A DNA stretch of 64,000 bases, taken from IMG/VR virus record IMGVR_UViG_3300017917_001342, positions 62,001-126,000 of that record; one strand, written 5' to 3'. Positions 1,568-54,883 of this stretch are shown one piece after another. Under the pieces are notes generated by a model, which was not told the origin of the DNA, searched no databases, and saw nothing but the letters and a program-made list of their open reading frames with translations. The position numbers and the translations under genes were made by a program. Numbering within the stretch: the stretch's first letter is position 1; each line of letters opens with the position of its first letter.

Positions 1568-1573
1568 TAAATA
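1568..1573 (+). promoter_or_regulatory. T4 gp55-type late promoter core (TAAATA)
   Basis: TAAATA just upstream of ATG 1579. The same element precedes many structural or late genes (13644-, 19146-, 19808+, 42600-, 45153+, 54845-, 54884+, 56579+, 60842+). Confidence 0.6.
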
Positions 1574-1578: not shown

Positions 1579-2729
1579 ATGCGTGTAGATGAATTTTTCA
1601 ATCCTATAATAGCGTTGCTGCATGGTAACATGCTGCTTAGCGAAGCCCCTATTGGCACTGCGATAGTAAATCGCAATTGGCGAGAGTATGACCTAGGTGG
1701 GAAACCCGATCGTGATTTTAAACTGTTAGGAAAACTTGGTAGATTTAAGATCGGTGTACAGCCCGAATGGAGTGATTCCATAGACTATGCAGTTGATGTG
1801 TTGATACTTGGTTCTAAAAATACTGTAGTTGGCAAAATCAACATTACTCGAGACGACCGATCGAATAGAAAGATTGCATTTTGGTCTATACACCAATCAA
1901 TACTACACAAAGACCTGCAAGGTCGAGGCATAATGCCTAAAGTCTATGCGTTTTTAGTAAACCACGGCTATAACCTTCGTGCTGACAGTGAACAAAGTGC
2001 AGGTGGACAAAACATCTGGGCTAAGCTAGCAAGGGATCCCAGTGTCAATGTCTATGCTGCATTGTACAATGAAAAAACAGGTGAAACTGAATTTTCTGAT
2101 GTAGATGGTGCTAGACAGCTACAGGCTAATTTTTATCTCTATCAGGATGAAATGGATGAAGAACTCAAATACATTGAGCACGAAATTGATTCGCTACGTG
2201 ATATCAGAGATCGCATCAATGATGATTATTTGGCTTTACCGAAAGATGATGAAGAAGCTGAAAAAAACTAAGTGACGAATACAATAGACTCACTGACCAG
2301 CTAGACAAATTAGACTCTGAATACAGCGAACTGAAATATAAACAGCGCGACGAAGCTCGTAAACAACTCTATCTCTTAGCTATACCCGCAGAACAATCAA
2401 TACCTGTAAATGAAGACGACGACGAAGATGAAGAACTACGTCGCGAAAATCAAAGTGATTTAGAAATGGTGCAAATAGATGGTATGAATATCATGTACCT
2501 ACACAACCCTAGAGAAATCGTACAGCTTGCCGCAGTAAAACAAAATCCCTACGCTATCTATGAAATTGATAATCTAAAATCCAAAACAGTGATATTAACA
2601 GCCATCTTAGGTTTACTAAGACGCGACAGCCTTAGAAATGCAAAACGTCTAACAGTGGAATTTCGTAAGAAATACCCCGATTGGCCAGAATGGGAAACCA
2701 TTACTCGCAGTTTGAAGGCTATACAATAA
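1579..2729 (+). CDS. Putative head-packaged protein: GNAT-like domain, coiled coil, DUF4116-like repeat and C-terminal WPE module; interrupted by a -1 frameshift at 2261-2268
   Basis: ORF 1579-2271 has an LQGRGIMPKVY acetyl-CoA-binding-like motif. The -1 frame is open from 2268 and runs into ORF 2466-2729. Confidence 0.65.
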
Positions 2730-3340
2730 TGCGTATAAATGAAATCAACTCCCACAATTTGAATACTGCAAGTGAAGCCGAGCAATTGGCTGCGGTAAAA
2801 AAGGATGGATATGCAATTCAATGGATACACGATCCCAGTGAGGCAGTGCAATTAGCTGCGGTGCAACAGAATGTACGGGCAATCCAAAACATCAAAAATC
2901 CCAGTGAGAGTGCGCAATTAGCTGCTGTGAATCATAATGTATGGGCAATACAAGGCATCAAAAATCCCAGTGAGAGTGCGCAATTAACTGCGGTGCAACA
3001 GAATGTACTGGCAATCCAATACATCAAAAATCCCAGTGAGAGTGCGCAATTAGCTGCTGTGAATCATAATGGATTGGTAATAAAATTCATAAAAAATCCC
3101 AGTGAGGCAGTGCAATTAGCTGCGGTGCAACAGAATGGCGCAGCAATCTTCCACATACTAACTCTCAATTCCACACAGTTAGATGATGCGGATACCAAAC
3201 GCATCATTATGGTTGCAGTTTTAAAATTGATAAAAAGTAATAAGTTATCTGATGCTAAACTACTTACTGACTATCTATCCGAACACCACGTCGACTGGCC
3301 GGAACTGGCAGTAATAAATCGTAGCTTAAAGGCGATATAG
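2729..3340 (+). CDS. DUF4116-like 22-aa repeat protein with C-terminal WPE module
   Basis: Repeats of NPSE(S/A)(A/V)QLAAV.....AI..IK; start reassigned to MRINE at 2729 (TAATG overlap). Confidence 0.8.
   Translation: MRINEINSHNLNTASEAEQLAAVKKDGYAIQWIHDPSEAVQLAAVQQNVRAIQNIKNPSESAQLAAVNHNVWAIQGIKNPSESAQLTAVQQNVLAIQYIKNPSESAQLAAVNHNGLVIKFIKNPSEAVQLAAVQQNGAAIFHILTLNSTQLDDADTKRIIMVAVLKLIKSNKLSDAKLLTDYLSEHHVDWPELAVINRSLKAI
2833..3135 (+). repeat. Intragenic 66-bp tandem repeat (~4.5 units)
   Basis: TCCCAGTGAG(AGTGC/GCAGT)GCAATTA(G/A)CTGC recurs every 66 bp and encodes the 22-aa repeats. Confidence 0.85.
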
Positions 3341-3342
3341 TA

Positions 3343-3948
3343 ATGCGTATAAACGAGTTAACACCTTATCGCAGAGATCCAAACTACAAAAAGGCTCAGG
3401 AAATATTTGCAGATCCTGAAACTGGATTACCACCTAGACGCAAATCCAAGCTTGCAAAACTAACTGCATGGTTAGATTCGCATGGCTTTAAAGTAGTAGG
3501 ACAAGGTTCGTTCGGTGCTGTATATGAAAAGCCTGGTTACCCTTGGGTATTCAAAGTATTCAACAAAGATCCTGCATACATGCATTTCCTACGTTATGCA
3601 ATGGCACATCAAGGCAACCCACATTTGCCTAAGATACGCGGTGTGATGAAAATAGACAACAACACCTATGTTGTACGTATGGAAAATCTCAAAGAAATAC
3701 CATTGGGATCAGAACCAGCTACTAAGCTGGTAAAGATACTACACAATATGGACAGCTACGGCGACATAGACGAAAAAGATGTAGACTGGATTAAGAAAAC
3801 ACTGCCTGGTATACACAACTTCTTTATGACATTTCCGCTAGGTGGTTACGAATACGATATTCACTATCAGAATCTCATGATGCGCGGCAATACCATAGTA
3901 ATAGTTGATCCACTGTATGATTGGCACGGAATGGAAGGCGACGAATGA
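3343..3948 (+). CDS. Ser/Thr protein kinase, T7 gp0.7-like (copy 1)
   Basis: Glycine loop GQGSFGAVY, VFKV lysine, catalytic DIHYQN, IVDP. Confidence 0.8.
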   Translation: MRINELTPYRRDPNYKKAQEIFADPETGLPPRRKSKLAKLTAWLDSHGFKVVGQGSFGAVYEKPGYPWVFKVFNKDPAYMHFLRYAMAHQGNPHLPKIRGVMKIDNNTYVVRMENLKEIPLGSEPATKLVKILHNMDSYGDIDEKDVDWIKKTLPGIHNFFMTFPLGGYEYDIHYQNLMMRGNTIVIVDPLYDWHGMEGDE

Positions 3949-4580
3949 AACTCAACGACTTATTTGAACGCCATTACCGTACTGTGCCTGCATATCAAAC
4001 TGCTAAGGCTGCGTTTGAACCTGTGACTGATCCAGAGTTAACACCAAATAAACGTAGGCAAGCAGGTGACGCTGCGTTAGCAAAATTCAACAACTACATG
4101 GACGAAAACGGTTTTGAAAAACTAGGGCAAGGTGCATTTGGTGCTGTATATGAAAAGCCTGGTTATCCTTGGGTATTTAAATTGTTTGCCAATGATGCAG
4201 CGTATCTTGCATGGATTAACTACGTTGCCACTCACCAAAACAATGAGCATGTTCCTAAACTCAAAGGCAAACCTTTTAGAATAACTGACGGTGTATTTGC
4301 AGTGCGTATGGAAAAATTGAGTCGCATGCCCGACACTTGGTGGGATGACCCGCTGTTAGATATGACAGTATATGGTGGTATAACCGCAGAGAATAGAAGA
4401 AAATTAAAAGAACTAGGGCATGAAGATCTAGCCGATGTACTAAGTGCAATTCATCAGTTGGCTCACGGTAATCCTAACAATGACTGGAACACTGACATGC
4501 ACGGTGGTAATATACTGATGCGCGGTGATATACCTGTTATTACAGATCCCCTAGTTGATCGCACTACCTTTGGAAAATAG
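3945..4580 (+). CDS. Ser/Thr protein kinase, T7 gp0.7-like (copy 2)
   Basis: GQGAFGAVY, VFKL, DMHGGNIL, VITDP; start reassigned to MKLNDL (ATGA overlap). Confidence 0.82.
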   Translation: MKLNDLFERHYRTVPAYQTAKAAFEPVTDPELTPNKRRQAGDAALAKFNNYMDENGFEKLGQGAFGAVYEKPGYPWVFKLFANDAAYLAWINYVATHQNNEHVPKLKGKPFRITDGVFAVRMEKLSRMPDTWWDDPLLDMTVYGGITAENRRKLKELGHEDLADVLSAIHQLAHGNPNNDWNTDMHGGNILMRGDIPVITDPLVDRTTFGK

Positions 4581-4589
4581 GCATAGACT

Positions 4590-5291
4590 ATGATACTGGA
4601 AGAGTTATTTTTTGTAGAAAATTACATATTAGATGAGATAACTCACTACAGAAACCTACCTGCATATCAAGCAGCTAAAGACGCATTTACTGGTGTAGGT
4701 CGTACTGGTCATTACGATGCTATGAAAAAGTTCAAGCAGTTTATGCAAGACAACGATTTCAAACGTCTAGGAGGCGGTGCATTTGGTGAAGTCTATGAAA
4801 AGGAAGGCTATCCCTGGGTATTCAAAGTATTTCACGGTGATCCTGCATACTTGGATTTTATACGTTATGCAATTGCACATCAAAGCAATCCACATGTACC
4901 AAAAGTCAAAGGACAGCCGTTTCGTATAGATGATAAAACCTATGCTATACGTATAGAAAAGCTACAGCCGTGGAGTGATTATTTCGACGTTAAAAGTGAA
5001 AACGGCACAACACTAATGGATTTTCTGCGTTGGTGGAACCCGCCATTGAAACAGGAACAAATAGAATTTTTGAAACAACGCAATGTCGAAGGATTAGTAG
5101 AAGTGCTTAACGGGCTCGCAGCACTGTGTCGTAGTAAAAATTACAGATTAGATCTACACTACGGTAATGTCATGCGACGAGGCAATACACCAGTTATTGC
5201 AGATCCTCTGGTTGATGACAAGAGTATGGAAAAAAGCAAGCCGCCGATGACTATGCCTGCAAGACCTGGCCGTGCTACTAGATCTGGATAA
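4590..5291 (+). CDS. Ser/Thr protein kinase, T7 gp0.7-like (copy 3)
   Basis: GGGAFGEVY, VFKV, DLHYGNVM, VIADP. Confidence 0.82.
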   Translation: MILEELFFVENYILDEITHYRNLPAYQAAKDAFTGVGRTGHYDAMKKFKQFMQDNDFKRLGGGAFGEVYEKEGYPWVFKVFHGDPAYLDFIRYAIAHQSNPHVPKVKGQPFRIDDKTYAIRIEKLQPWSDYFDVKSENGTTLMDFLRWWNPPLKQEQIEFLKQRNVEGLVEVLNGLAALCRSKNYRLDLHYGNVMRRGNTPVIADPLVDDKSMEKSKPPMTMPARPGRATRSG

Positions 5292-5295: not shown

Positions 5296-5511
5296 TTATT
5301 TTAAGCCGTGCAGTCTACAGAGGCTTTTATGTCCATCTTCGGCTGCGTCTTGAGACTCGTAAAACGCCAAGGTTTCAGTTCCGTTTTCGCTGGACATCAC
5401 TGTGGTATATTTGCCATGTCTGCTAGTAAACTGTAATTCGTAAGTTGATAAACGTATAGTTTCTAAATTAGATAACCCGCCATCACTCGAAGATATTTGC
5501 CACAGTGCCAT
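5296..5511 (-). CDS. Small hypothetical protein, paralogue of the next gene
   Basis: Shares the I(R/V)(L/V)ST.E ... Y....A..GH.S.C pattern with 5535-5801. Confidence 0.6.
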   Translation of the reverse strand: MALWQISSSDGGLSNLETIRLSTYELQFTSRHGKYTTVMSSENGTETLAFYESQDAAEDGHKSLCRLHGLK

Positions 5512-5534: not shown

Positions 5535-5801
5535 TCAGGGATATTTAACACCGTATTCACGACAGATACTAGCATGTCCGGCTGCTGCTTCTGCAACAGT
5601 ATCATAACGTTCTACAACATCACTGTCAGTGACAGTGTAAGTTGCAGCGGTGTCATCAAACTTCAAACCAAACACACAGGTTTCGTAACGGTATCCAAAA
5701 TCAAAATCTTTGATCTTAGGCATTTCAATTGTGCTTACACGAACTGTTGCAGGACGAAGCAGTCCGCCATTGTTAGAATCCAAGTGCCAACGATTATCCA
5801 T
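5535..5801 (-). CDS. Small hypothetical protein
   Basis: ORF track; GAGG RBS; paralogous to 5296-5511. Confidence 0.7.
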   Translation of the reverse strand: MDNRWHLDSNNGGLLRPATVRVSTIEMPKIKDFDFGYRYETCVFGLKFDDTAATYTVTDSDVVERYDTVAEAAAGHASICREYGVKYP

Positions 5802-21317: not shown

Positions 21318-22811
21318 TCAAGCGTTGGTAAAAACTTTTATGCCGTATTCTTTTTCAAACGCCGCAGCATCGGCTTCGTCATTTACTATAGGTTGGCCTT
21401 TGATATTGAGACTGGTGTTTACCAGCATCGGGCAACCAGTTTCGCTATACCAACGCCGTAACAATTGATATAATCCCACATGCTGTTTGACATTTACCGT
21501 TTGTACTCTGCTTGTTCCGTCTACATGCACTATACCTGGAAAACGTTCTGGGTATTTACATTTAAGAGTGTATTGCATATAGCTAAGATCTTGTCCGTTG
21601 GTTTCAAAGTATTGATCAACATACTCTTCAAGAATCACCGGAGCAAAAGGTCTGAATGACTCGCGCTTTTTGACCACGTTGAGACGATCTTGAATATCTA
21701 CTATTCGCGGATCAGCTAACAGACTTCTATTACCCAATGCACGTGGTCCAAATTCTGCTCGACCGTTTGCTACACCTACAATGCCAGTTTGGTGTAGTTG
21801 ATGTATCACAGCACCAACTGGATACAGACCTTTGATATTGTGTCCTAGATAAGGGCCTTCCCATTTAACTGGTGTTTTTAAATAGGCCAATGCTGCACCT
21901 AGACTGTTTCCTGCATCACCAGGGTTTGGCATTATCCATATTTTATCCCATATGCCTTGTTGTGCAATAGCAGTGTTGGTTACGCAATTCAATGCACACC
22001 CTCCGCTTAATACAAGATTACTAGACTTTGCTGTAGCTTTTAGCCATTTACTGAGTTCCAGCATAATATCAGTAAACACTTCTTGTGCTGCTGCTGCAAG
22101 GTTTTCTACATCTGTTATTTCTGGATGCCAATTGATTATACCACGATGCATGTTAACTCGGCAACGGTAAAACGGCCATGTTGGTAAAACTTCTATCAAC
22201 TCATCTAAGATGAGATGTTTGTATTTCCATGAATAGCCGCATGCAGATAAACCCATCATAATGTATTCTTCTTCATTGGGTTTAAATCCGCAACGCTGTG
22301 TCATTGCAGTATAAAACAATCCTAGACTGTTTGGATATCTAGCACTAGCTATTTTTTTAAGGCTGTTACCCTGTCCTTTCCATGCAGTAGTAGTATCCCA
22401 TTCTCCGATTGCATCTATTACCAATATTGCAGCAGAATCGAATCCGCTTGTGTAATAACCACCTGCTGCATGACTGTGATGATGACTAACTGTGTGTACT
22501 GGTACATTGATAAAACCAATGTTGTTTAATAGTTTCTTAGGATTTGGCTCAAATACATCTCGCCACTGTCCTGCCCAGAGTTCTCTAGTGCGTTTTAAAA
22601 ACGGTTTTTCATGCCACACAATAACATTAGGATAACCAGCCGACCTGATTGATAATGCATCAATTAGCATTTGACGATTTATAGTATCGTCATTTTTAAT
22701 TTTACTGTAGCGTTCACTGTGACTGGCCCATTGTATTTTACCATTTTTAACAACGCTTACAGCAGCATCGTGACCGCCAGCGGAAAACCCCCAAACATTG
22801 ATATTTTGCAT
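21318..22811 (-). CDS. Carbamoyltransferase (NodU/CmcH family)
   Basis: HDAAV, ERYSKIK, HHHSHA, GGCALNC, GDAG, EFGPRALGNRS, FRPFAP, VHVDGTSR, NTSLN. Confidence 0.93.
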   Translation of the reverse strand: MQNINVWGFSAGGHDAAVSVVKNGKIQWASHSERYSKIKNDDTINRQMLIDALSIRSAGYPNVIVWHEKPFLKRTRELWAGQWRDVFEPNPKKLLNNIGFINVPVHTVSHHHSHAAGGYYTSGFDSAAILVIDAIGEWDTTTAWKGQGNSLKKIASARYPNSLGLFYTAMTQRCGFKPNEEEYIMMGLSACGYSWKYKHLILDELIEVLPTWPFYRCRVNMHRGIINWHPEITDVENLAAAAQEVFTDIMLELSKWLKATAKSSNLVLSGGCALNCVTNTAIAQQGIWDKIWIMPNPGDAGNSLGAALAYLKTPVKWEGPYLGHNIKGLYPVGAVIHQLHQTGIVGVANGRAEFGPRALGNRSLLADPRIVDIQDRLNVVKKRESFRPFAPVILEEYVDQYFETNGQDLSYMQYTLKCKYPERFPGIVHVDGTSRVQTVNVKQHVGLYQLLRRWYSETGCPMLVNTSLNIKGQPIVNDEADAAAFEKEYGIKVFTNA

Positions 22812-22862: not shown

Positions 22863-24098
22863 ATGACAATTTATATTCTTTATCACAACACTAGAAATAA
22901 CAGTGTACCGCAGTGGAATTACATACCAACTCCGGACCTAGCTAGAAGCTGTGATGATGTAGATGATCAATTTGATTTAACGTTAGTTGAATCTATGCCA
23001 AACACTGACATAGCCTATGCAAAAATAGAAGCTGTGCCGCAAGGTAGCAAATGGCTATATGCCATTAACAATCTCTACAGTAACGATGTCTATACACAAA
23101 ACGGGTTGGATGTGTTAGATCATTTTTGCTCGGATGAGAGACTTATGTCGGATTTACTATCGGGCCATGGTCGAATACTATTTGATGACAGACGAGAAGG
23201 GTACTTGTATGACAATTATATTGGTGGACAAATCAGTCAGTTCTTCTCTAATAGAAACATACCGTTGGATAAAGTTGTATTTGCTACGGGTACAGCCAAT
23301 GCCGAACAGATTTTCAATTATAGAAACTATGAGATTAAGCCATTTTATGTAAGACAGTTTGAGTTAGAAGCCAGTAAACTCTGCGACACTGTACCTTATC
23401 AGTCAAATAGATTACCTGTTAAACGTTTTTTATGTTTCAATCGCAGATATGCTTATCGACTACATAGATTACAATTTTTATCATTGATATATCAACACAA
23501 CCTATTACCACTGTTTTATTACAGTATGCTGGATGGTGTTGATCATGTAAGTGTAGTAGATGCTGCAAAAAGTCTAATAGGCAATGAACCACAGCATTTT
23601 AAAACCTATGAAACTATGTTAAAGTTACATGATAAAATGCCAATGTCGATAGATACAGATGACCTGCAAACAAATTTAGCAACTACACACTATTTGCCAA
23701 CTGTACAGGATTTTTACAATCAATCTGCAATCAGTGTAGTAGTAGAAACACTGTTTTATGACAGTGAAATATTTTTAAGTGAAAAAATTTGGCATCCTAT
23801 TAGAATGTCGCAGCCCTTTATTTTAGTTGGTGGTGCAGGATCTCTACAGCATCTGCGTGATTTAGGATACAAGACCTTTGATCATTGGTGGGACGAAAGC
23901 TACGATAACATCGCTGATCCATACGATAGAATGATGTCAATCGTGTCGATTATTAAACAGATATCAAATTGGTCTGAATTCCAACTGTCTTTATTTTTAA
24001 TAGAATCGGCAGAAATATGTAAACACAATTTCAATCATTTAATGTCTGCAAAACATAGAATATCGTATGATTCACAAATAACACAGTTATTTTTATAA
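22863..24098 (+). CDS. Putative glycosyltransferase-like protein (paralogue 2)
   Basis: FLCFNRR...HR, VVVET, SEKIWHP, LGYKTF..WWDESYD. Confidence 0.55.
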   Translation: MTIYILYHNTRNNSVPQWNYIPTPDLARSCDDVDDQFDLTLVESMPNTDIAYAKIEAVPQGSKWLYAINNLYSNDVYTQNGLDVLDHFCSDERLMSDLLSGHGRILFDDRREGYLYDNYIGGQISQFFSNRNIPLDKVVFATGTANAEQIFNYRNYEIKPFYVRQFELEASKLCDTVPYQSNRLPVKRFLCFNRRYAYRLHRLQFLSLIYQHNLLPLFYYSMLDGVDHVSVVDAAKSLIGNEPQHFKTYETMLKLHDKMPMSIDTDDLQTNLATTHYLPTVQDFYNQSAISVVVETLFYDSEIFLSEKIWHPIRMSQPFILVGGAGSLQHLRDLGYKTFDHWWDESYDNIADPYDRMMSIVSIIKQISNWSEFQLSLFLIESAEICKHNFNHLMSAKHRISYDSQITQLFL

Positions 24099-24995
24099 AT
24101 TGAAATTTGTCTTTATATATGGAATTAGATATTCACTTGCAAAATGTTCGTGTGAATATCTAGATGGATGGCCTAACAATGCTCTACCATAGACATTGTT
24201 TTCTTTTGCGTGCAATAGAGAATGATTCATAGTATATGCAAATGTGTTGGCATTAAAAAAGTCTTGCAAATCTTTTACTATACTTGGATAGTATATGTTG
24301 TCTCCAATTTTTTGTATAGCTCGTTCTATAGTGTCGTCTAAAACCCAATCATCTAACAGTTTACGGTTCAGTTCAGGATTTTCTCTGTATATGTTTACAG
24401 GGTCAATGATAATATGAGGCACATCCTTAAGGATCTGTTTTATTGCAATGATGTGATTTTTTACATGCAGGTATTTGGTCAGCACATCATCACCATACAT
24501 ATCAGACAACTCTATATACTGTTTGTGCAATTTACTTTTGTTATGTGGTGCATAATTGTTATGCGTTCTAATCTTGTCGTGCCCTGTTTGTTCATTTAAT
24601 TTTGTAGTCCTATATGGAAAAGTAAGACCTACTATAACCAATGTGTCTGACGATATGTCATTTTTATGTAATATAAGTTCTGACATTATTGCATCGTTAC
24701 TGTATCCAGCCCACGCATAATTTTTGTAACTACTAAATTTAAAATGCCTTGAAATAATACCAGATATGCAGTAGCTATGGCAACGTTCTTCATAGTCTGC
24801 TGTTTGCATCTCAATGTCCCATAGTGCGTCAAAATGTGAACCTTTTAAAAGTTCAACTGGCACTGCACCAGAAATTTTATCTCTAGGTAAATCTTTAACT
24901 ATATGTTCTATTCTATGTTTTAAATCAGCATCGTCTTGTGGTAATTCAGTGCCGTACATATAACTGTCGCCAAATGTCAATAGCTTAGTAATCAT
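24093..24995 (-). CDS. SGNH/GDSL-like hypothetical protein
   Basis: FGDSYMYG, N.A..G.SN, GHPS...H. Confidence 0.55.
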   Translation of the reverse strand: MITKLLTFGDSYMYGTELPQDDADLKHRIEHIVKDLPRDKISGAVPVELLKGSHFDALWDIEMQTADYEERCHSYCISGIISRHFKFSSYKNYAWAGYSNDAIMSELILHKNDISSDTLVIVGLTFPYRTTKLNEQTGHDKIRTHNNYAPHNKSKLHKQYIELSDMYGDDVLTKYLHVKNHIIAIKQILKDVPHIIIDPVNIYRENPELNRKLLDDWVLDDTIERAIQKIGDNIYYPSIVKDLQDFFNANTFAYTMNHSLLHAKENNVYGRALLGHPSRYSHEHFASEYLIPYIKTNFNL

Positions 24996-26115
24996 TTAGA
25001 AACTCTTTTAATTTTGGAAATGTTGCAGTGTAATCGGTTTTTCTAATGCTATCTAACGCAGTCAGATAATCTTTCATTTTACGTGCAAGCTGTTCGCTGT
25101 CGTCTGCTGTATCATATTGCATTATAGTGTCAAGTGTTACGCCGTTGAATTTAACACCTGTACAATCAATTGCAGACAGATATTCGTGTAATTGGTCTTT
25201 TGGTAATATATTAAATTTCAAAAAATCTGGCGATACTAATAGATTCAAATGTAAAAACAAATCATGGTCTTTAGAAAATTTTACAGCATCACCGATATTA
25301 AAAACGCTCATTGCATTTACTGTGTAAGTTAATGACAATGATACACTAGACGGTTTGTTACGAATTACATATTGCAAATTATCCATTACAGAATCGAAAT
25401 TTGCAGGGAATCGCTGGTATTCAAATTCTTCTTTAACTAAACTGTCTATACTCCAATTTAAACCTACATACTTAAATTTAGAATACGTATCTAATAATTC
25501 GTCTGTGATTTTAACTGTTCCGTTAGTATTAGTTCTTATCTTTTGATTTTTGCTTGTGCCAATATCAACGCAAAAGTTTAATATATCGTAATGATATTTG
25601 ATTAATAACGGTTCGCCGCCGTAGAATTCTAATAGTTCTACTTCCTGTATATAGGGTTTAATAGTGTTGAATACATCGACATTGTGTATCCATTTATATT
25701 TTGATGTATTGAATTTATAGCCATTCAATTTTTCAAAATCTGAATACCACATACTACTATTACCGGGAGCACACATAACACACTTTAAATTACAAACGTT
25801 GTTAAATTTAATGTCTAAACTGCGAGGTGTTGATTTTACTAATAGTCCTCGATCATCTTGTTCAAACAAACGCTTACTGTAGCCATTGTTGGCTTCTACT
25901 TCCCAGCAGTGATTACAACTTGGTATATTATAGCTGTCAACATCATTTGCATGACGTATACGGTCAGTTGAATTCCATACAGATTCTGGGGTATCTGTTG
26001 CAATATTATATTCGGTGCCGTCATCTTTTACATAGACATGTGTACTGAGACAGCAAGGCGCAAATGTGCCATCATTTCGTATTTCTAAATTAGTATGAGG
26101 CATGATGCAGCGCAT
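24985..26115 (-). CDS. Radical SAM protein with N-terminal Cys-rich (twitch-like) domain
   Basis: CNLKCVMC, GGEP; N-terminal C..P...PCC...CNHC. Confidence 0.9.
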   Translation of the reverse strand: MRCIMPHTNLEIRNDGTFAPCCLSTHVYVKDDGTEYNIATDTPESVWNSTDRIRHANDVDSYNIPSCNHCWEVEANNGYSKRLFEQDDRGLLVKSTPRSLDIKFNNVCNLKCVMCAPGNSSMWYSDFEKLNGYKFNTSKYKWIHNVDVFNTIKPYIQEVELLEFYGGEPLLIKYHYDILNFCVDIGTSKNQKIRTNTNGTVKITDELLDTYSKFKYVGLNWSIDSLVKEEFEYQRFPANFDSVMDNLQYVIRNKPSSVSLSLTYTVNAMSVFNIGDAVKFSKDHDLFLHLNLLVSPDFLKFNILPKDQLHEYLSAIDCTGVKFNGVTLDTIMQYDTADDSEQLARKMKDYLTALDSIRKTDYTATFPKLKEFLNDY

Positions 26116-27587
26116 TATTGTTCAGCTTCTCTTTTTGTATTGTAATAATGCAACAGCTCGCGTTCCATGTAACTCATATAGGCTTCTTCGTTGAATGTTT
26201 TCCAATTCAATCGTTTACATTCTTCACTCATACGCTGTCGTCGACGAAAAATTTCTGGGAAGTCTAACGTGCTGATGTGTTTACTTTTCCAAAACGTGCC
26301 AACATCGTTTACTACTAACTCGTCTTTTTGATCTGCAAAATCTGTTCCCGGTAAAAATGCAATATAGTGTTGCAAATTCAATGATGCAATCGTACCGTCA
26401 TCACTTGCCCATTTGTAATCATGTAGAAACTTGATGTTTTCTTCGAAATCTTCTTCGGTTTCTAATGGGTGGCCAAACAGCACGTTGAACATTACAAAAA
26501 TACGACTTTTACTTAGATTATGAATAGTATCACGCAGAGCTTCATTATCAAACCCTTTTCTCATAATTTTACGCATACGTTCACTTGCATGTTCGAGTCC
26601 AATGCCCACGTTTTCTAAACCGGCTTCTGCTGCTCGCATATAATCATCTAGTGACATCTGACTGTTTGATCGTGCTATGAACTGGCCGCCCCATCTAAAT
26701 TTCACACCGTTGCGACTTTGATAATCTAACAGCACATCGACTAGTTCTCTAAATGCTTTCATGCTGCCATTGATTAAACTGTCACTTAGATAAAATGTGT
26801 CAACACCTTTCTGCTCATAGTGATATATCATTTCCATTGCAATGTGTTCACCGCCACGAGTTTTAAATTTGGGCCATAGTCTGTACACATCGCAGAAATC
26901 GCAGCGTCTAACGCAACCGCGACTACCAGTTAATATATAAGTCGGCTTGCCAGAATCATATTTTTCAAACGGATATAACTTGTGATCACATTCTTCGTAA
27001 TTTGCAAATGCTAGACCTTCTAGGTTTTGTATTTGTCTATTTGCTCGATTGATGCCTACAGCAGTTGGGTTGTTTTTGCAGATTAATTCAACTACTGCTA
27101 CTTCACCTTCACCTGTTATGTAGTAGTCAATTAATCCGTCGTCTAGCAGTTTTTTAGCAAACTCGAATGATGTATCTCCCAATGCATCGCCTAGTCCTGC
27201 GCCACCTATTAGTATCTTTTTATCGGGCCAATTTGCTCTAATGAATTTGATAATATCTACACCAACTCTTCTACTGTTGAGACTGAAAATGCTTATACCG
27301 ATCCATGTTGGATTGTGTTTTGTAATATAGTCGTTGAAAATTTCTTTAAGACGATGAATTACTTTGTCATACAATTCCTGCATGGGATCATAGGTATGCC
27401 AGTGCAACATATATACGATGTCGTCCCAGTGTTCCTTAAACGAGTTGTATATCAGTATATTGGTATCAACTGCTGCACAGGTTACAGTGCCACTGGCTTC
27501 TATTTGACCTTTTAAATGGTAAATGGCCGGTGCCGGCCATTTGATTTCCATAAGAGGTATTGCAAATAATATTACGTCTTTTTTCAT
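26115..27587 (-). CDS. B12-binding-domain radical SAM protein
   Basis: N-terminal IGIS...IGG...GEGE cobalamin-binding-like domain; GSRGCVRRCDFC; IGLE; G.P.ETEEDF. Confidence 0.88.
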   Translation of the reverse strand: MKKDVILFAIPLMEIKWPAPAIYHLKGQIEASGTVTCAAVDTNILIYNSFKEHWDDIVYMLHWHTYDPMQELYDKVIHRLKEIFNDYITKHNPTWIGISIFSLNSRRVGVDIIKFIRANWPDKKILIGGAGLGDALGDTSFEFAKKLLDDGLIDYYITGEGEVAVVELICKNNPTAVGINRANRQIQNLEGLAFANYEECDHKLYPFEKYDSGKPTYILTGSRGCVRRCDFCDVYRLWPKFKTRGGEHIAMEMIYHYEQKGVDTFYLSDSLINGSMKAFRELVDVLLDYQSRNGVKFRWGGQFIARSNSQMSLDDYMRAAEAGLENVGIGLEHASERMRKIMRKGFDNEALRDTIHNLSKSRIFVMFNVLFGHPLETEEDFEENIKFLHDYKWASDDGTIASLNLQHYIAFLPGTDFADQKDELVVNDVGTFWKSKHISTLDFPEIFRRRQRMSEECKRLNWKTFNEEAYMSYMERELLHYYNTKREAEQ

Positions 27588-27590
27588 ATG

Positions 27591-28841
27591 TCATATTACT
27601 TTTTTATAGTGATCAATCAGTTCAGGGAATGTATCAGCAAAACTTTCGGATCTAATCCTATCTAGTGAATCTGTCATAAAAATAAATTTGTCATGTATTT
27701 CTTTTAGTTCTTCTGCACTTCTATCTTTACCAGTGTACATATAAGAAATTATTCCGTCGTAATAGAATTTTAGTTTTTCACGAGTTTCGACACAGTCAAA
27801 TGTATTTAAATGATTAGAAAACTTTTCTTTTACCCTAGCTTTGTAATCGTCATTTAGTGTATTGATATGATACCATTTTGGATCGGTTAATACATTACCA
27901 AGATGCATATTATGTATTTTCATCCCGCAGGAGAATAGATAGTCTAAAAAGTCTGGCAAATGTAAGATATTAAACACCTGTATAGTCGGACTAACATTAA
28001 ATTGTACGTTTGGACTTTTTATCAACAGATGAATGTTTTTATCAATTACATTCCACTTGGTACCTTTTCTAATGTATTCTGCACGACTGCCCATGCCATC
28101 TAGACTTGCCATTACCTGCACTAAATGAAAATTCTTCCATAGATCTACATTGTTCCAATGCTTGTATTTGATTTTCAATAGATTGGTGTTATAACGCAGC
28201 TTGACGTCGAATCGTTTCTTCTCTATTAACTTTTCAAGTATGTAATAGTGTTCGTCCATTATCAGCGGTTCGCCACCGGCAAAATAGATTTCTTCTACAT
28301 TGTCTATCTGATCGTCTAGAATTTTATACATGTCTTCGATACTGTGGTCTTTGGTATTGACTACAGGGACTTTTTCACTTGTTGCACCGTATAGTTCTTT
28401 TTCGTCGTTGAACCACAAACTGCTGAGATGACCACCGCACATTCTGCATTTCATGTTACAGAGGTTGCTAAATCTAAAATCCCAGTATCGCAGTTTCATT
28501 TCATCCAATGAACCATCTGGATTGGTCTTTTTAACAGACTCTTCTATATGATGTTCAAATGTCCAGTTGGCATTGTGCCTAAAACTAACAATGTCATTGT
28601 CTTCTTGTTCGAAACATTTAGTGCAGAGTTTTGGCTTTTCACCATTTAGAAACTGCAATCGTAGATTTTTCATGTGTTCGCTATTCCATAGTTCGAATAG
28701 CGTATTGTCTTTGAGATTGCCGATTGATGATTTGTAATTTGTAATACAGCATTGATAAACATTGCCATTTGGCCAAGTGTTTAAATGTATCCACGGTATA
28801 ATACAAAATGTCGGTGTTGGTATTTTATCAGTTTTGTTCAT
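27591..28841 (-). CDS. Radical SAM protein (twitch-like N-terminus)
   Basis: FCIIPW...QCC...CTKC; CNMKCRMC; GGEP. Confidence 0.9.
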   Translation of the reverse strand: MNKTDKIPTPTFCIIPWIHLNTWPNGNVYQCCITNYKSSIGNLKDNTLFELWNSEHMKNLRLQFLNGEKPKLCTKCFEQEDNDIVSFRHNANWTFEHHIEESVKKTNPDGSLDEMKLRYWDFRFSNLCNMKCRMCGGHLSSLWFNDEKELYGATSEKVPVVNTKDHSIEDMYKILDDQIDNVEEIYFAGGEPLIMDEHYYILEKLIEKKRFDVKLRYNTNLLKIKYKHWNNVDLWKNFHLVQVMASLDGMGSRAEYIRKGTKWNVIDKNIHLLIKSPNVQFNVSPTIQVFNILHLPDFLDYLFSCGMKIHNMHLGNVLTDPKWYHINTLNDDYKARVKEKFSNHLNTFDCVETREKLKFYYDGIISYMYTGKDRSAEELKEIHDKFIFMTDSLDRIRSESFADTFPELIDHYKKVI

Positions 28842-30183
28842 TTATTGTATTCCACCATTGACTGAATTCTTCGTTATTAACAGCATTTACTATATTTAAA
28901 TTTCTACGAGATGCATAGCTTTTAAAGAAATTAACAAAGTCGTTAACTTTGTCTTGATATTGATCAACATCTTCGTAACTTTTGTCTACACTACGCAAAT
29001 AAGAAACTACTCTCATAAATTGATCTAATTCGCTGGGACTTAAAAATCCTTTTCTCGTAGCTAACCAATCATCGAACTTAGTTACCAATGCTTGTTTAAT
29101 GCTCGGTGGTAATATATTAACACTTTGAAAACTTGGGAATCTTAAAATGTTAAGAGACATACTGTACAATCCGGGTGGACTATTAGCTTCTCGTCTTAGA
29201 TCTATTATGTCATCCATGAATTCAGTAATACCAAATACAGACAACGCACTGATGGTCATCATTATGGTTATGCGACGATATTTGGCATTTGCTGTAAACA
29301 GTTTAAGATTGCGTTTCCATTGTTCATAGTCTAAACCATGACGTACAAACTCTGCCAATTCTCCGGTTGCTTCACAGCTTGTATACAGATCAAAATTTTC
29401 AAACTTGTTTGTGCAGTCTATTAGATTTTGCAATCTTTGATTGTCCATGATTAGGTTAGAGTTAACTGCAAATCTAAACTTTTCACCTTGACACTTTTCA
29501 ACTAATTTCCAAAAGTCTGGGCTTCTTGTAGGTTCGCCTCCGGTGACACGAAGTTCTTGAAGATTGTACTTCAAACTGTCATCAAACCACTTAAAAAAGC
29601 TTTTCACAAAAAAGTTGTTGTCGGACTTTGGGTCAAACGCATATGCATGACTTCCGTCATTTTGATAGGTTTGACCGCCGCCTGTGTTCATGTTTTCATA
29701 AATGCCATTTGTTTTAATGTCATTTGACCATGTGCTAGAAAATTCCGGATTGCAATATGTACAACTGAGATTACATAGGTTATCAAAACTGATTTCTAAA
29801 GTCTTGGGATCTACGTTTTCTTGCCAGTTGAGTGTTTTTAGATAATTGATTTCTTCTTCTGTGTAAATTGCACTTTTGTATGTGCGATCACTGTTTACAT
29901 TACTGTCAGCATCTTCAACACGCCAGCAGTAGCTACATTCTTCAGGACGCTTGCCTTCTAGCATTAGTCTGCGCTGTTCTTTTTTGAACTCTGTATTGTG
30001 TAATGCAGTTGGATTTTTGAATAGTTCTCCAGGCGGTACATAATGTGCAGCAGGGTGGTGGCAACTAGCCGTGCGACCATTGCTTAGCCATATAGTTGCG
30101 TTGTACCATTTTGCTGCACAGAAACTTGGACTTATTGAGTTTATGTGTGTTTTTACATTATCTAAATGTTTATTATTGCTCAT
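28828..30183 (-). CDS. Radical SAM protein (CHHP subtype)
   Basis: FCAAKW...SCHHP...CSYC; CNLSCTYC; GGEP. Confidence 0.9.
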   Translation of the reverse strand: MSNNKHLDNVKTHINSISPSFCAAKWYNATIWLSNGRTASCHHPAAHYVPPGELFKNPTALHNTEFKKEQRRLMLEGKRPEECSYCWRVEDADSNVNSDRTYKSAIYTEEEINYLKTLNWQENVDPKTLEISFDNLCNLSCTYCNPEFSSTWSNDIKTNGIYENMNTGGGQTYQNDGSHAYAFDPKSDNNFFVKSFFKWFDDSLKYNLQELRVTGGEPTRSPDFWKLVEKCQGEKFRFAVNSNLIMDNQRLQNLIDCTNKFENFDLYTSCEATGELAEFVRHGLDYEQWKRNLKLFTANAKYRRITIMMTISALSVFGITEFMDDIIDLRREANSPPGLYSMSLNILRFPSFQSVNILPPSIKQALVTKFDDWLATRKGFLSPSELDQFMRVVSYLRSVDKSYEDVDQYQDKVNDFVNFFKSYASRRNLNIVNAVNNEEFSQWWNTINEQN

Positions 30184-31594
30184 TTATTTTGGCCTGTTCG
30201 CAGATATCGTAGAATCGTTTTAGATTTGGAAATGTGGAATGAAAATCTGTGTTTCGACGCTTGTCGTATTCGTCGACAAACTTCTTAAAATTGTAACGGT
30301 TTTCGTTGACATCGCCTACAGTGTCTTCGTTCATAAATTTTATAAAGCGTTCAATCTGATTGATTTCATCTTCCCATAGTATGTCAGTTGTGTCTATCAC
30401 ACCAACACGATGATTAACCATTATGTCTGTTAGACTGTTTTTTACTTCTAGTTTAGTTTCTTCATCTAAGTTGGTTACTGCTAATTTTTGAGGCCATCGC
30501 AGATAGTTTGTCATACATGGTAGTACATTGCCTTGTGTCATAGAATTAGTAATGTACTTTTTTCTTAATTTAAGTACATCATGTAAAAACAAGTTAAATG
30601 TGCCAACACTGAAAATATTAACAGTGGTCATAAAACCAAAGACCAAATTGAATTTGTTGAACAACGCTGTTAAAATTTTATCGCAGTTTTTATACCATCT
30701 GTCATAGTTCAATCCGTATCTGGTATATTCTGCTTGCGCACCAGTTGCTTCACCGCTTGTGAAGATCTGCACTTCTTTGATGTTGGGACCTATTTTACTA
30801 AGAACACGTATAAGACGATCAATCATATCATCTTGCACATCTAGGTTTGTATTGATTGCCAGCGTGAGATTTTCTCTAGGATTTTTAGCTATAGCATCAA
30901 GTACTTTCCAACAGTCTTTACTCATCAGTGGCTCACCACCTGTTAATCGTATAGTGTGTAAATTGTTATACAATTCAGGCCACCATTGCCAAAATGCATC
31001 TACATAGGGATTTTTCTCTCTATGTGGAATAGGCATCTTACCAGTTTCTTTTAAAGTGTCAAAATTGTTGTACAACGTAGTTGTTGGATAAGGACCATGC
31101 TTTTTGATTTCGTCATACCATTTGCTGCTTAGGTCCGGACTGCAATACGCACATTTCAAATTGCATACGTTACTGAATGAAATTTCCATGTATGTGGGAT
31201 TGATATCTTTTGTGCCTGTTTCTAACACATCAAACAGGTGAGGTTTACTCCATGTTACTTTGCTTTTGTAGACTCTGTCACTGAAATAGTCATCACCCAT
31301 GTCTTCTACACGCCAGCAGTAATCACACTCTGCTGGACGTTTACCATCTAACATCATTTGCATTTGCTGTTTTTTATGACTTGTGTTATGCAATGCTTTG
31401 AAATTGTTAGCAATTTCGTCAACTGGTATTTTATGAGTAGGTGGGTGATGACAACTATGGTTCATACCATTCTGTAGATAAATGGTATGCTGTAACCATT
31501 TAGCCAAACAAAAACTTGGACTTATACTGTTTAACTGGTCACGTTCTCTACGCAATTCGTCAATCTGTGATTGTTTTGTCATGTGATATACCAT
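30173..31594 (-). CDS. Radical SAM protein (CHHP subtype)
   Basis: FCLAKW...SCHHP...CDYC; CNLKCAYC; GGEP. Confidence 0.9.
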   Translation of the reverse strand: MVYHMTKQSQIDELRRERDQLNSISPSFCLAKWLQHTIYLQNGMNHSCHHPPTHKIPVDEIANNFKALHNTSHKKQQMQMMLDGKRPAECDYCWRVEDMGDDYFSDRVYKSKVTWSKPHLFDVLETGTKDINPTYMEISFSNVCNLKCAYCSPDLSSKWYDEIKKHGPYPTTTLYNNFDTLKETGKMPIPHREKNPYVDAFWQWWPELYNNLHTIRLTGGEPLMSKDCWKVLDAIAKNPRENLTLAINTNLDVQDDMIDRLIRVLSKIGPNIKEVQIFTSGEATGAQAEYTRYGLNYDRWYKNCDKILTALFNKFNLVFGFMTTVNIFSVGTFNLFLHDVLKLRKKYITNSMTQGNVLPCMTNYLRWPQKLAVTNLDEETKLEVKNSLTDIMVNHRVGVIDTTDILWEDEINQIERFIKFMNEDTVGDVNENRYNFKKFVDEYDKRRNTDFHSTFPNLKRFYDICEQAKINEQ

Positions 31595-32766
31595 TAAAAT
31601 GCTGTGTTAGTGCGACGAGTATTACCGTAATGAATTACTTTAACGGCACCTGATTTTGATATTGCAGTTCGCCATGGATCTATTACAACACTGCCATTTG
31701 CCATTGCAGTTAGATCATAGTCAACGTTGTGACCTAGCAGATACACTGCTGGTACAGCTAATGCCGTGTCATAGCTAGGTGTTGAGCCCAGTTGGTCACA
31801 GTAATATCCAACCAACATACCATAGCTACCATCTGTATATGGTACGCCTGGTTTGAAGCTTTTACCTAGTATTACAATAGGTAACTGATGCTTATGCAAC
31901 TCGACTGCTAGGTTTTTAGCTTGAACTTCTCTAGCAGTCATTATTGCATCAAACAAATCATAACCAAGATCTAAACGTTCTGCTAACCATCGCAATGCAA
32001 TATTGTCTCGTGGATGGCATGGTCCGCCGTCGCCCATGCCAGGTTTCATATATGCCGGTCCCATGATGCGATAGGTGCTGTCCGACAGCGCAGTTGCTAC
32101 TATATCAACATTCATATTGCCAATACGTTCGGCTACATCTTGAATCATATTAACAAGACTTAATTTTGCAGATATAAAAGTGTTGTAGAATATTTTGATA
32201 CTTTCGACTTCTTCCCAAGTACCTGTGATAATTCTTGGATTATTTTGCATCAATGGAGCATAGAGATTTTTCAATGCTGTAACAGCATTGGTATTTGCTC
32301 CCGTGCTGTTACCTATCATTATCATTTCTGGGTTCACCATATCAGATGCAACCGATCCCATTGCTATGAGATATGGATTGTAAATCAATTCGCCCTGAGT
32401 AATCAGGTTTGCTAGTTCTCGTCTAGTTGTACCAGGTAACACTGTGCTTATTAATACTATGATATGAGATGCAGTTGCAACACTGTTAATTTGCTGCAAC
32501 ACAGCTTTTACATAGGAATAATCAAAGTCTTTGTTATCCAAGTGACTGCTAGGTGTGCTGCCATCATATTTTGGATCATGCGGTGTTTGCACAGCTATAA
32601 AAACAATGTCACTGTTTTTCACAGTGTCCTGTACACTATCTACTATGTTAACGGTGTTGCTTTTTACAGCAGGATTTACATCGTAGCCGTATACCGTGTA
32701 GTGTGTAGCCATTGCTTCTGCAACAGGTAACCCAAGTTTACCCAGGCCGATCATTCCTATTTTCAT
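31594..32766 (-). CDS. UDP-glucose/GDP-mannose dehydrogenase family protein
   Basis: GLGKLG Rossmann motif, AVQTP, STVLPG, GGPCHPRD, SFKPG. Confidence 0.9.
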   Translation of the reverse strand: MKIGMIGLGKLGLPVAEAMATHYTVYGYDVNPAVKSNTVNIVDSVQDTVKNSDIVFIAVQTPHDPKYDGSTPSSHLDNKDFDYSYVKAVLQQINSVATASHIIVLISTVLPGTTRRELANLITQGELIYNPYLIAMGSVASDMVNPEMIMIGNSTGANTNAVTALKNLYAPLMQNNPRIITGTWEEVESIKIFYNTFISAKLSLVNMIQDVAERIGNMNVDIVATALSDSTYRIMGPAYMKPGMGDGGPCHPRDNIALRWLAERLDLGYDLFDAIMTAREVQAKNLAVELHKHQLPIVILGKSFKPGVPYTDGSYGMLVGYYCDQLGSTPSYDTALAVPAVYLLGHNVDYDLTAMANGSVVIDPWRTAISKSGAVKVIHYGNTRRTNTAF

Positions 32767-32804
32767 CAGTAAAACTCCGTTTCAACATTGTACTAGTTGT
32801 TGTA

Positions 32805-32915
32805 TTATTTGTATATAAACGGATCGCGTTTTCTAAGTTCTGCTAACCTTTTTTTGAGTTTCTTCTTATCCAAGTACCATTTAACTAGTCGTAGCTTTTT
32901 GAACCAATTTAACAT
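32805..32915 (-). CDS. Small basic peptide (36 aa, MLNWFKKLRLVKWYLDKKKLKKRLAELRKRDPFIYK)
   Basis: Manual translation; GGAG RBS; overlaps the upstream stop; below the ORF-track length cut-off. Confidence 0.65.
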   Translation of the reverse strand: MLNWFKKLRLVKWYLDKKKLKKRLAELRKRDPFIYK

Positions 32916-34180
32916 GTTGTGTCTCCGTTGTAAATTTTCATAAACTGTGAATATGCAGGTGTTTTAAACCAGTTTCTACTTAAAAACCATTGTTGGTTGT
33001 GCATACATATTTCTTTTACCTGTTCTAACCAACTCCATTTATCTCGTACAAACGATAAATTTTGCAAGTTACTTAATATAATAGCAACCCTATCTGCAAA
33101 TGGCGCAGTGTCATAACTTTCGTCGAATACAGAGTCAAATGTTTCAAACCCCCAGGACTTTAATTTTGCAAGTGTACCTTGATGACCTAATACCATGAAT
33201 GGTTGTTGCGCCCACAGGGGTTTCCATAGTTTTTCGCTAATGAACAAGTTGTAAGGCTCATCAAATGCATGAGTTTCTGTAATAACACTTGCCCAGCTTT
33301 TTAAATAAATGCTGCGATTAATTTGCATTGCTTTGTTATTGTTAAAATCAGAATCATCTATTACAAGCGGCAATACAGTTTTAGCTTTATCAACTACTTC
33401 TTGTGGTACACCATGTGCAGTCCAATTGTCGTAAACCAATGTGTTATGGCTTATCATCCCTTTTAAATGAAGGTCGTGTTCTATTAAACGCATTACCATA
33501 ACTTCTCTGTGATGGCGGCTTACTCTGTTTAGACAATTAAACAGTTTGACATTGTAGTTGTTTGATTTTGAAACTTTATGATCGTTCCATTCTACTGCGT
33601 TGCTTCTACGTAAATTCAATTGTTGCATATACATTAAATGTGGAAACCCTATTATGCTTATGCGATCATTGATTTTATGAATATCACACCATTGTTTATA
33701 ACCATCAGCATCTAATTCGTTACCAGTTAGAAACAAAAAACTTTTTGGCGGAATATGGTGTTCTGCACACAGCTTATGAAAATATTCATACAGTTTTGTA
33801 TCGTAGAATCCTTCGTTAAGGTTGTCAACTACTAATAGTGCTTTACCAGTCTTGGCATCATCTAACACGGCCGATGGTATGAAATTGACAAATGGTTCGT
33901 AACCATAGCTGTTACCGGGCCAACCAGTCCAGTAGTCTGCATCATTCCATGTGCCTATATTATACGCATATCTATCTGGTCTATTTTCCACACCGCTGTG
34001 GCACCAATTGTGATTATCTCGATTCCACCAATTTAATCGCCAATAGTGAAACATATTAGCAACGGGAAATCTACCAGACGACAACTCCCATCTTGGCCCG
34101 TGAGTTGTGTGCGGACATGCAGTCATTGTTCTGAATCTTTTTGGGTCATCAAAAACCCAATGTACATTGTCGGTGTTCAT
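32909..34180 (-). CDS. Putative glycosyltransferase-like protein (paralogue 3)
   Basis: FNCLNR...HR, VITET, ISEKLWKP, GFETFDSVFDESYD. Confidence 0.55.
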   Translation of the reverse strand: MNTDNVHWVFDDPKRFRTMTACPHTTHGPRWELSSGRFPVANMFHYWRLNWWNRDNHNWCHSGVENRPDRYAYNIGTWNDADYWTGWPGNSYGYEPFVNFIPSAVLDDAKTGKALLVVDNLNEGFYDTKLYEYFHKLCAEHHIPPKSFLFLTGNELDADGYKQWCDIHKINDRISIIGFPHLMYMQQLNLRRSNAVEWNDHKVSKSNNYNVKLFNCLNRVSRHHREVMVMRLIEHDLHLKGMISHNTLVYDNWTAHGVPQEVVDKAKTVLPLVIDDSDFNNNKAMQINRSIYLKSWASVITETHAFDEPYNLFISEKLWKPLWAQQPFMVLGHQGTLAKLKSWGFETFDSVFDESYDTAPFADRVAIILSNLQNLSFVRDKWSWLEQVKEICMHNQQWFLSRNWFKTPAYSQFMKIYNGDTTC

Positions 34181-40499: not shown

Positions 40500-40574
40500 T
40501 TTACTTGACAGTACCGTAAAGGTATGTTAATGTGTCTTCGGCTATATCTCTCACCAACAATGGAGCAACGTTAC

Positions 40575-54845: not shown

Positions 54846-54883
54846 GTCAATATTTATGCGGAGGACAGTTTATAAATATTACC

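Follow-up and report, generated by a model that had tools for sequence, protein, structure and literature searches.

Tandem T7 gp0.7-like kinases in a 519-kb phage genome: promoter evidence for late control and an N-terminal tag that may direct them into the head

Why should a giant phage keep several relatives of an early T7 enzyme in what reads as a late operon, and why should these proteins open with similar residues? In T7, the gp0.7 kinase (T7K) is a hyperpromiscuous protein kinase that is used early to disarm host defences through mass phosphorylation (PMC13645617). The question arises at positions 3343-5291 of a stretch that comprises bases 62001-126000 of the 518,643-bp IMG/VR virus record IMGVR_UViG_3300017917_001342 (the window, i. 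e., the whole 64,000-nt piece of DNA that was analysed). There, an initial annotation had described three tandem T7 gp0.7-like kinases, here called K1, K2, and K3, and had suggested that they are made late, packaged in the head, and injected. Open reading frames (ORFs), profiles, motifs, and predicted fold all confirm the array. Judged by these features, K1-K3 and a further paralogue, K4, are probably active kinase-domain-only relatives of T7 gp0.7, with protein kinase activity predicted.

The family is larger than first described, as K4 lies outside the window, about 125 kb from K1-K3, and the count of three holds for the window but not for the genome. K1-K3 share 38-41% pairwise identity (E 1e-36 to 1e-46) and match PHROG 15752, a gp0.7-type kinase family, with E-values of 3e-16, 1e-10, and 6e-9, respectively; K1 and K2 additionally match PHROG 2828 (E 7e-6 and 1e-4). 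The Pfam family PF27024 (Phage_T7_kinase) is found on K4 and on orthologues of K1-K3, while K1-K3 themselves gave no match to a Pfam-A library that had no model for the gp0.7-type kinase family. A literature search for the string 'Phage_T7_kinase' returned no paper. The direct comparison with T7 gp0.7 that had been proposed came out clearly: a profile of 66 family members aligned with gp0.7 by hhalign at a probability of 98.3% (E 1.6e-14) over 161 columns with all motifs in register, and the kinase family profile picks up T7 gene 0.7 at E 1.6e-18. At the nucleotide level, megablast of the region against GenBank phages gave no match, and tblastn gave five distant records and nothing else.

The catalytic residues, which had been read as intact in all three diverged paralogues, are in fact invariant across the four paralogues and 66 homologues (K1 numbering: G53/G55/G58/V60, K71, D172-x-H174-x-x-N177, and D189-P190-L191). 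They form a glycine-rich loop of the type GxGxxGxV, a beta-3 lysine within VFKV (VIKV in T7), and a DxHxxN motif that occurs as DIHYQN, DMHGGN, or DLHYGN (DMHSGN in T7), followed by DP(V/L) in place of DFG, with DPL here and DPV in T7. A C-terminal shut-off/DNA-binding domain is absent, the chains ending 10-45 residues past DPL. The AlphaFold (AF2) kinase model is of high confidence (predicted local distance difference test 92, predicted template modelling score 0.88), and its best matches by Foldseek among the predicted viral structures of BFVD are T7-like phage kinases, with E-values down to 5e-12 and template modelling (TM) scores up to 0.68. Against the PDB, the model returns a general protein-kinase-like fold, with eukaryotic protein kinases and the aminoglycoside phosphotransferases APH(2'') and APH(3') mixed at similar E-values and TM scores of 0.35-0.42, and the structure search of Swiss-Prot models in the AlphaFold database (AFDB) lists ribulosamine and hygromycin kinases; the PDB and Swiss-Prot searches are unable to tell protein kinases from small-molecule kinases. 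Searches of PDB sequences with phmmer and hmmsearch gave weak glycine-loop matches to EGFR and a Legionella effector and nothing better.

In a quick tree, K1, K2, K3, and K4 each fall into a separate clade with orthologues from other metagenomes (Shimodaira-Hasegawa-like approximate likelihood ratio support 98-100). Because each paralogue groups with its own orthologues, the four are old and maintained, a recent tandem duplication could be rejected, and differing specificities of K1-K4 would be compatible with these four clades. The family as a whole is large: a threshold of E <= 1e-3 gives 6,268 cluster representatives, and one of E <= 1e-10 still gives 3,380. Relatives carry 1, 2, 3, or 6 tandem kinase genes, and arrays are, to judge from these loci, the rule in this clade. 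Some relatives join the domains in one chain: one protein of 1021 aa (P0121) contains five kinase domains, and another of 1769 aa (P0126) combines three T7K-like kinase domains with a C-terminal Acb1 anti-CBASS domain, a fusion that links the kinase family to counter-defence. Among cultured phages, the 171-kb Rhizobium phage RHph_I1_18 has at least two adjacent T7K-like kinase genes at the start of its record (positions 41-2567, profile E 1e-36 and 1e-34), and kinase arrays might be studied experimentally in this phage.

The genome in which the kinases reside has direct terminal repeats and 40.7% GC and stems from a pond metagenome, with near relatives found across many freshwater samples. By its portal protein, the phage is most closely related, among cultured phages, to Pseudomonas phage PA5oct (51% identity), Agrobacterium phage Atu_ph07, Sinorhizobium phage Phosso, and Rak2-like phages. 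Its head module is arranged as in T4, with genes for portal, small core protein, protease, scaffold-like protein, and capsid protein in this order, and includes a gp21-family prohead protease gene at genome 407489-408130 (PF03420, E 9e-26); the phage, with its 519-kb genome, is a myovirus-like member of the T4 superfamily. A gene for a gp55-like late sigma factor lies at genome 419800-420666 (phrog_12791, E 7e-84; phrog_234, E 8e-21), and T4 gp55 itself matches this factor weakly (E 3.7e-4). The window additionally encodes a second sigma factor, a 501-aa protein of the sigma-70 family (40524-42029 (+), phrog_351, E 8e-91).

The hexamer TAAATA, which the initial annotation had taken for a late promoter, is three- to four-fold depleted in this genome, with 204 sites observed as compared to about 700 expected, and 98 of the 204 lie within 100 nt upstream of predicted starts. 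Their spacing to the ATG falls into two classes, a broad one of 15-35 nt and a sharp one of four or five nucleotides (N4-5; 21 sites, with none at N0-3 or N6). The sites share the consensus (A/C)TAAATA(T)(C/T); farther upstream, neither a -35 element nor anything else is conserved. Sites precede the genes for tail sheath, portal, prohead protease, and tail fibre, so that the genome shows what is expected of gp55-type control, namely a TATAAATA-like -10 element without -35 upstream of structural genes. In the Rak2-like phage CBB, ATAAATA has likewise been proposed as late promoter (PMC5259590). On this distribution, TAAATA behaves as a gp55-type late promoter in the present genome. The N4-5 spacing implies leaderless or near-leaderless mRNA and suggests that many late mRNAs of this phage may be leaderless. 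Two further sites of this class in the window lie at 54851-54856 (-), before an 809-aa tail fibre gene, and at 54873-54878 (+), before the ORF at 54884.

With K1-K3 ends a compact plus-strand unit (1579-5291) that is flanked by minus-strand genes, and the sole plus-strand TAAATA between window positions 1 and 16257 heads this unit. The promoter originally assigned to the kinases is thus in place as that of the operon; it does not stand directly before them but 1.77 kb upstream of K1. K4 belongs to a two-gene unit with TAAATA about 36 nt upstream. In relatives, TAAATA occurs at most 45 nt before the first kinase in four homologue-bearing contigs, and of about 38 distinct IMG/VR loci, about 21 show the same arrangement, mostly at N4-5. 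Because this arrangement recurs in unrelated contigs of 33-55% GC, late, gp55-type control of the kinase clade is regarded as well supported, which upholds the reading of a late operon; the timing itself we infer from the promoters. By the same token, the early host-takeover expression that characterises the gp0.7 family is not what these promoters predict, with TAAATA-N5-ATG at the head of the operon and no sigma-70-type promoter found.

The second half of the question concerns the leaders MRINEL, MKLNDLFE, and MILEELF at the starts of K1, K2, and K3, which turned out to belong to an enriched N-terminal tag. The pattern M-[KR]-[ILVFY]-x-[ED]-[ILVFY] was counted in a six-frame translation (ORFs of at least 60 aa) against an expectation from position-specific N-terminal frequencies. 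It occurs 21 times, 20 of them at ORF N-termini, and 17 leader-bearing genes compare with 1.9 expected (P 2e-11); the corresponding numbers for PA5oct are 5 and 0.76, and T4 shows no excess. Besides the four kinases, the tagged proteins comprise an amidoligase, a cytidylyltransferase-like protein, a Pol-beta nucleotidyltransferase, two GNAT-like proteins, a NUDIX hydrolase, a GH19 enzyme, and DUF4116 proteins; apart from the kinases and one repeat module, these families are unrelated to one another. The first eight residues of K2, for example, are also the start of a nucleotidyltransferase-like protein of 599 aa (genome 201354) that is unrelated to the kinases. Many tagged genes lie within a late plus-strand cluster at 193-221 kb, and by counts partly made by hand, TAAATA-headed units hold 20 of 21 tagged genes as compared to 124 of 768 other genes. 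The leader is conserved as amino acids with varied codons, is kept in 87 of 120 kinase homologues, and typically ends in LFE, IFE, FVE, INE, or ITE, i. e., (L/I/V)-x-E. It is a real, statistically enriched tag on unrelated enzymes.

Related genomes use the tag in a similar manner. Nearly all of the first about 60 homologues of the tagged GH19 protein open with it although the rest of their N-terminal regions differ, and no cultured phage matches the leader part of the tagged GH19 proteins. On one 114-kb contig (L135, 37-10389), nine of 14 neighbouring genes start with MRAxEF(I/V)(T/S)E or a near variant, including genes for GP88, DUF6934, GH19, and amidoligase proteins, and on another (L136, 4411-10957) seven of 13 genes start with a MKIxEL-type leader. 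Kinases, GH19 enzymes, and a small ORF, proteins unrelated to one another, have a second conserved N-terminal motif behind the leader, G(R/G)(I/V)V(K/P)GVNTT.DVG (P0062, P0077, P0082, and P0089; genome ORF 495464; GH19 homologues P0281 and P0289-P0299); a literature search for the string 'KGVNTT' found no paper.

What such a tag could do is suggested by T4, in which the internal proteins, Alt, and gp24 enter the prohead via N-terminal propeptides of 10-20 residues, the capsid targeting sequences (CTSs), that are removed by gp21 (PMC5694885). The starts are alike: T4 gp24 begins with MAKINELLRE and IPIII with MKTYQEFIAE, to be compared with MKINEL in close K1 orthologues, MRINEL in K1, and MRANEFITE in other tagged proteins. 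A 9-residue tag profile, built from uncultured phages alone and run on the N-termini of 409 T4 ORFs with one deletion allowed, a tolerance of register introduced after a fixed-register profile had failed, ranked IPIII first, IPII second, gp24 third, and IPI seventh. An earlier register-tolerant profile, its tolerance likewise chosen after the first failure, had placed Alt at rank 6, IPI at rank 8, and IPIII and IPII at ranks 25 and 26 of 409. A gp21-family protease is encoded and the tag ends in (L/I)-x-E, by which it may be open to cleavage. In PA5oct, four of the six tagged proteins (EST35_0150, 0205, 0230, and 0381, none of them a kinase) are among the virion proteins detected with ESI-MS/MS, as compared to 93 of 461 proteins overall (binomial P ~0.02; PMC7318152), an enrichment that rests on just these six. 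One of the four is a small protein whose gene follows that of the portal, in the place of gp67, and two tagged proteins of the present phage are homologous to PA5oct virion proteins. Two observations on other genes may be added. T4 gene 61.1 (NC_000866 18966-19130 (-), a 54-aa hypothetical protein; tag-profile rank 5) starts with MKTFKEFIKE, which is almost the CTS of IPI and IPIII. PA5oct EST35_0271 (MK797984 180252 (-)) has TAAATA-N5-ATG and the leader MKIKEII five codons inside the annotated gene, and its true start may be 180252 rather than 180267.

By analogy with T4, head packaging of the kinases is plausible, if somewhat short of probable. The complete explanation, that T7K-type kinases are made late, carry a CTS-like tag, and are packed into the head and injected, is put forward in the same tentative spirit. 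The kinases would be transcribed late from a gp55-type TAAATA promoter on leaderless mRNA, and the tag would carry them and the other tagged enzymes into the prohead core, as with T4 Alt and the internal proteins, where the gp21-like protease may trim it. Upon infection, the enzymes would be ejected along with the DNA, and the kinases could phosphorylate host proteins ahead of any phage gene expression. A bolder version, possible but rather doubtful, is that the tag M-[KR]-h-x-[DE]-h, often continued as ...EF(I/V)(T/S)E, defines a large unrecognised cargo system of huge and large uncultured freshwater phages, in which dozens of late enzymes would be injected as an anti-defence arsenal. Its cargo would include T7-type kinase arrays, GNATs, nucleotidyltransferases, amidoligases, NUDIX and GH19 proteins, and Acb1 fusions, and membership could be read from the first nine residues.

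Several observations weigh against packaging. The likeness to T4 depends on the belated register tolerance, as the fixed-register profile (a position-specific scoring matrix) misses the T4 CTS proteins and gives UvsY as top match, and the 9-residue profile does not find Alt among the 409 N-termini. The PA5oct enrichment is a matter of six proteins, and the kinase was not found in PA5oct, Atu_ph07, Phosso, or T4, so that the proteomes of these phages say nothing directly on it. The GH19 tags are followed by a hydrophobic stretch resembling a signal-arrest-release (SAR) sequence, and the homologue in the jumbophage Munch is untagged and lies among small early-looking ORFs. Finally, in fused multi-kinase proteins the segment recurs at the inner domains as QLNELKGY or QLNELTGY, and T7 gp0.7 opens with MNITDI though it is early and not known to be packaged. 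Because the inner fused domains retain the segment, the kinase 'leader' may belong to the N-terminal helices of the domain rather than being a detachable tag.

These last two points favour the most serious alternative, according to which the kinases are late products that remain inside the cell in which they are made, the N-terminal segment being the first helix of the kinase clade. Late in infection, they would then act on proteins of the host or of the phage itself, for instance, to blunt abortive infection triggered by late structural proteins or to regulate assembly or lysis. The promoter evidence fits this scenario equally well, and the segment MRINELTGYK.NP.Y..A is conserved far beyond its first six residues in the 87 of 120 homologues that keep it. 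A helix peculiar to kinases would, however, not explain why about 17 non-kinase families here, and whole clusters of genes elsewhere, begin with the tag, why it matches the T4 CTSs and propeptides, or why tagged PA5oct proteins are enriched in virions; moreover, defences that act early, such as those countered by T7K, would escape an anti-defence kinase that is present only late (PMC13645617). Retention in the cell is accordingly considered rather unlikely, yet worth keeping in view.

Less likely again is that the N-terminal motif is a signal of another kind, serving translation of leaderless mRNA, recognition by a chaperone or AAA+ translocase, or regulated proteolysis. Many tagged genes indeed belong to the TAAATA-N4/5-ATG leaderless class, the hydrophobic SAR- or transmembrane-like stretch after the tag of GH19 homologues is unlike a head protein, and BCS1/Clp-type AAA+ proteins of jumbo phages have been proposed to handle packaged proteins (PMC7824862). 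On the other hand, the tag also opens operon-internal genes with ordinary upstream sequence (K1, K2, K4, and those at genome 201354 and 205695), its amino acids are conserved while the codons vary, and it resembles the starts of T4 IPII, IPIII, and gp24.

It is quite improbable that TAAATA is not late-only, or that a second promoter is present, with the kinases being also or mainly expressed early as in T7. A TTGAAA lies 17 nt upstream of the TAAATA, the sole RNA-labelled run is probably DNA, and a search for the gp45-type clamp (PF02916) found no match in the genome but none in controls either; CBB has been reported to lack both the co-activator gp33 and the sliding clamp gp45 (PMC5259590). 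This reading is countered by a sigma-70 scan before ORF 1579 that gave nothing convincing, by the absence of -35 conservation at TAAATA sites, and by the position of the element before structural genes in a genome that encodes a gp55-like factor. Least credible of all is the possibility, named in the initial annotation as one that would refute its reading, that the proteins act on small molecules, as aminoglycoside or choline kinases do, since the APH, ribulosamine, and hygromycin kinase matches, albeit with E-values like those of eukaryotic protein kinases, come with low TM scores to solved structures and mixed with protein kinases, whereas the T7-like phage kinases of BFVD match clearly better, T7 gp0.7 is matched significantly by the profile, and experiments have shown T7K and its relatives to be protein kinases (PMC13645617).

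The features of the locus and those discussed with it are collected below. The operon has five or six genes. The frame 2272-2729 has no start codon before 2466, and behind the stop of the first ORF (1579-2271) another 156 codons can be read in the -1 frame without a stop. In contigs of related strains from two independent samples, the A7 run is an A8, with one extra A inserted behind position 2260, by which the ORFs 1579-2271 and 2272-2729 are fused in frame as a 387-aa gene. ORF 1579-2271 is probably the N-terminal part of a 387-aa protein running on to 2729, and the split in this record may come from an assembly or homopolymer error or from programmed -1 slippage, or it may be a genuine frameshift mutation. 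The ATG of K2 overlaps the stop codon of K1 as ATGA.

Features of the kinase operon and of related loci (window coordinates unless marked as genome)
Feature	Position	Strand	Description
TAAATA	1568-1573	+	context CTAAATATTCCC-ATG; 5 nt before the first ATG of the operon (1579)
First operon gene	1579-2271	+	230 aa; leader MRVDEFF; weak GNAT-like match
A7 run	2261-2267	+	inside the heptamer A AAA AAC, just ahead of the stop of ORF 1579-2271
Open frame	2272-2729	+	coiled-coil/acidic stretch, DUF4116 repeat, ~50-aa C-terminal module
DUF4116 repeat protein	2726-3340	+	204 aa; leader MRINEIN; same ~50-aa C-terminal module
K1	3343-3948	+	201 aa; leader MRINEL; T7 gp0.7-like kinase domain
K2	3945-4580	+	211 aa from the ATG at 3945; leader MKLNDLFE; T7 gp0.7-like kinase domain
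K3	4590-5291	+	233 aa; leader variant MILEELFFVE; T7 gp0.7-like kinase domain
TAAATA	56549-56554	+	24 nt before the GH19 gene
GH19 muramidase/chitinase-like	56579-57550	+	323 aa; leader MRYYEIA, then Ala/Gly-rich hydrophobic stretch
K4	genome 191509-192105	-	fourth paralogue, outside the window

The module of about 50 aa shared by the two DUF4116 ORFs of the operon recurs in the late plus-strand cluster of large proteins (genome 193926-221437), several members of which carry the leader and one of which, of 1677 aa, has a DUF6861 match. Downstream of the kinases, the minus strand encodes two small paralogues, a dCMP-deaminase-like protein, RNA ligase 1, and a transglycosylase, and the kinase-deaminase-ligase neighbourhood is kept in one relative. 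The small paralogous ORFs 5296-5511 (-) and 5535-5801 (-), of 71 and 88 aa and with no family match, converge on the kinase operon; TTAAATATCC lies 30 nt upstream of ORF 5296-5511 (-). Farther along the window, about ten paralogous radical SAM genes, some with SPASM or B12-binding domains, form an array (24093-40212 (-)) that adjoins genes for a UDP-glucose dehydrogenase-like protein (31594-32766) and for a carbamoyltransferase of the Nol-like kind (21318-22811). This region is a large modification or biosynthesis cluster, which is unusual in a phage.

The significance of the locus lies in a large clade of jumbophage T7K relatives that appears to be wired opposite to T7, with late promoters, as many as six genes in an array or five domains in one chain, and in one case a fusion to Acb1. 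Should the tag serve to target proteins to the capsid, these phages would bring kinases in active form, along with other enzymes, into the cell together with the DNA, which would explain an anti-defence kinase as a late gene. The tag would then also provide a simple sequence rule to predict the injected proteins of uncultured phages, as well as a natural means to load foreign proteins into large capsids. If it is not a targeting signal, promiscuous kinases acting late would represent a new facet of giant-phage biology.

Set against T7 gp0.7, the kinases have a homologous domain with the same predicted fold, in which glycine loop, beta-3 lysine, DxHxxN, and DP(V/L) align. They differ in lacking the shut-off/DNA-binding domain, in being present in four copies instead of one, in DPL instead of DPV, and in being placed behind a T4-type late promoter of a 519-kb myovirus-like genome, in contrast to the early E. 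coli promoters used in T7. Similar in architecture are the T7K homologues reported from the jumbophages Munch (Salmonella) and G17 (Escherichia), which are kinase-only, without shut-off domain and with DPL (PMC13645617). Like K1-K4, these are proteins of about 200 aa from Rak2-type giant phages, and the Munch kinase matches the family profile at E 3e-16. However, it is very distant in the tree, is present as a single copy surrounded by many small ORFs, starts with MTKQEIF without a leader, and lacks TAAATA-N5-ATG.

As regards delivery, the T4 model of Alt, IPI-III, and the gp24 propeptide shares with the present phage the proteins that are, or would be, made late, the short N-terminal tag on unrelated proteins, the gp21-family protease, and, as a model, ejection with the DNA. 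In contrast to T4, the tag differs in register by one residue, packaging and cleavage are proposals here, and the candidate cargo consists of kinases and many other enzymes instead of ADP-ribosyltransferases (ARTs) and internal proteins. The polyvalent proteins of phages and conjugative elements (cited in PMC7824862) likewise bring together arsenals of GNAT, ART, and nucleotidyltransferase domains that are thought to be delivered with DNA, and the fusion of up to five kinase domains, or of three with Acb1, in relatives of K1-K4 recalls their architecture. The enzymes described here, however, are mostly encoded by separate tagged genes and not as one giant polypeptide, and no MuF-type head anchor was seen. 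What is new in comparison with all of these systems is the rewiring of T7K-type kinases to T4-type late, possibly leaderless, expression, which is well supported as far as late control is concerned, in combination with a CTS-like tag that makes their packaging plausible.

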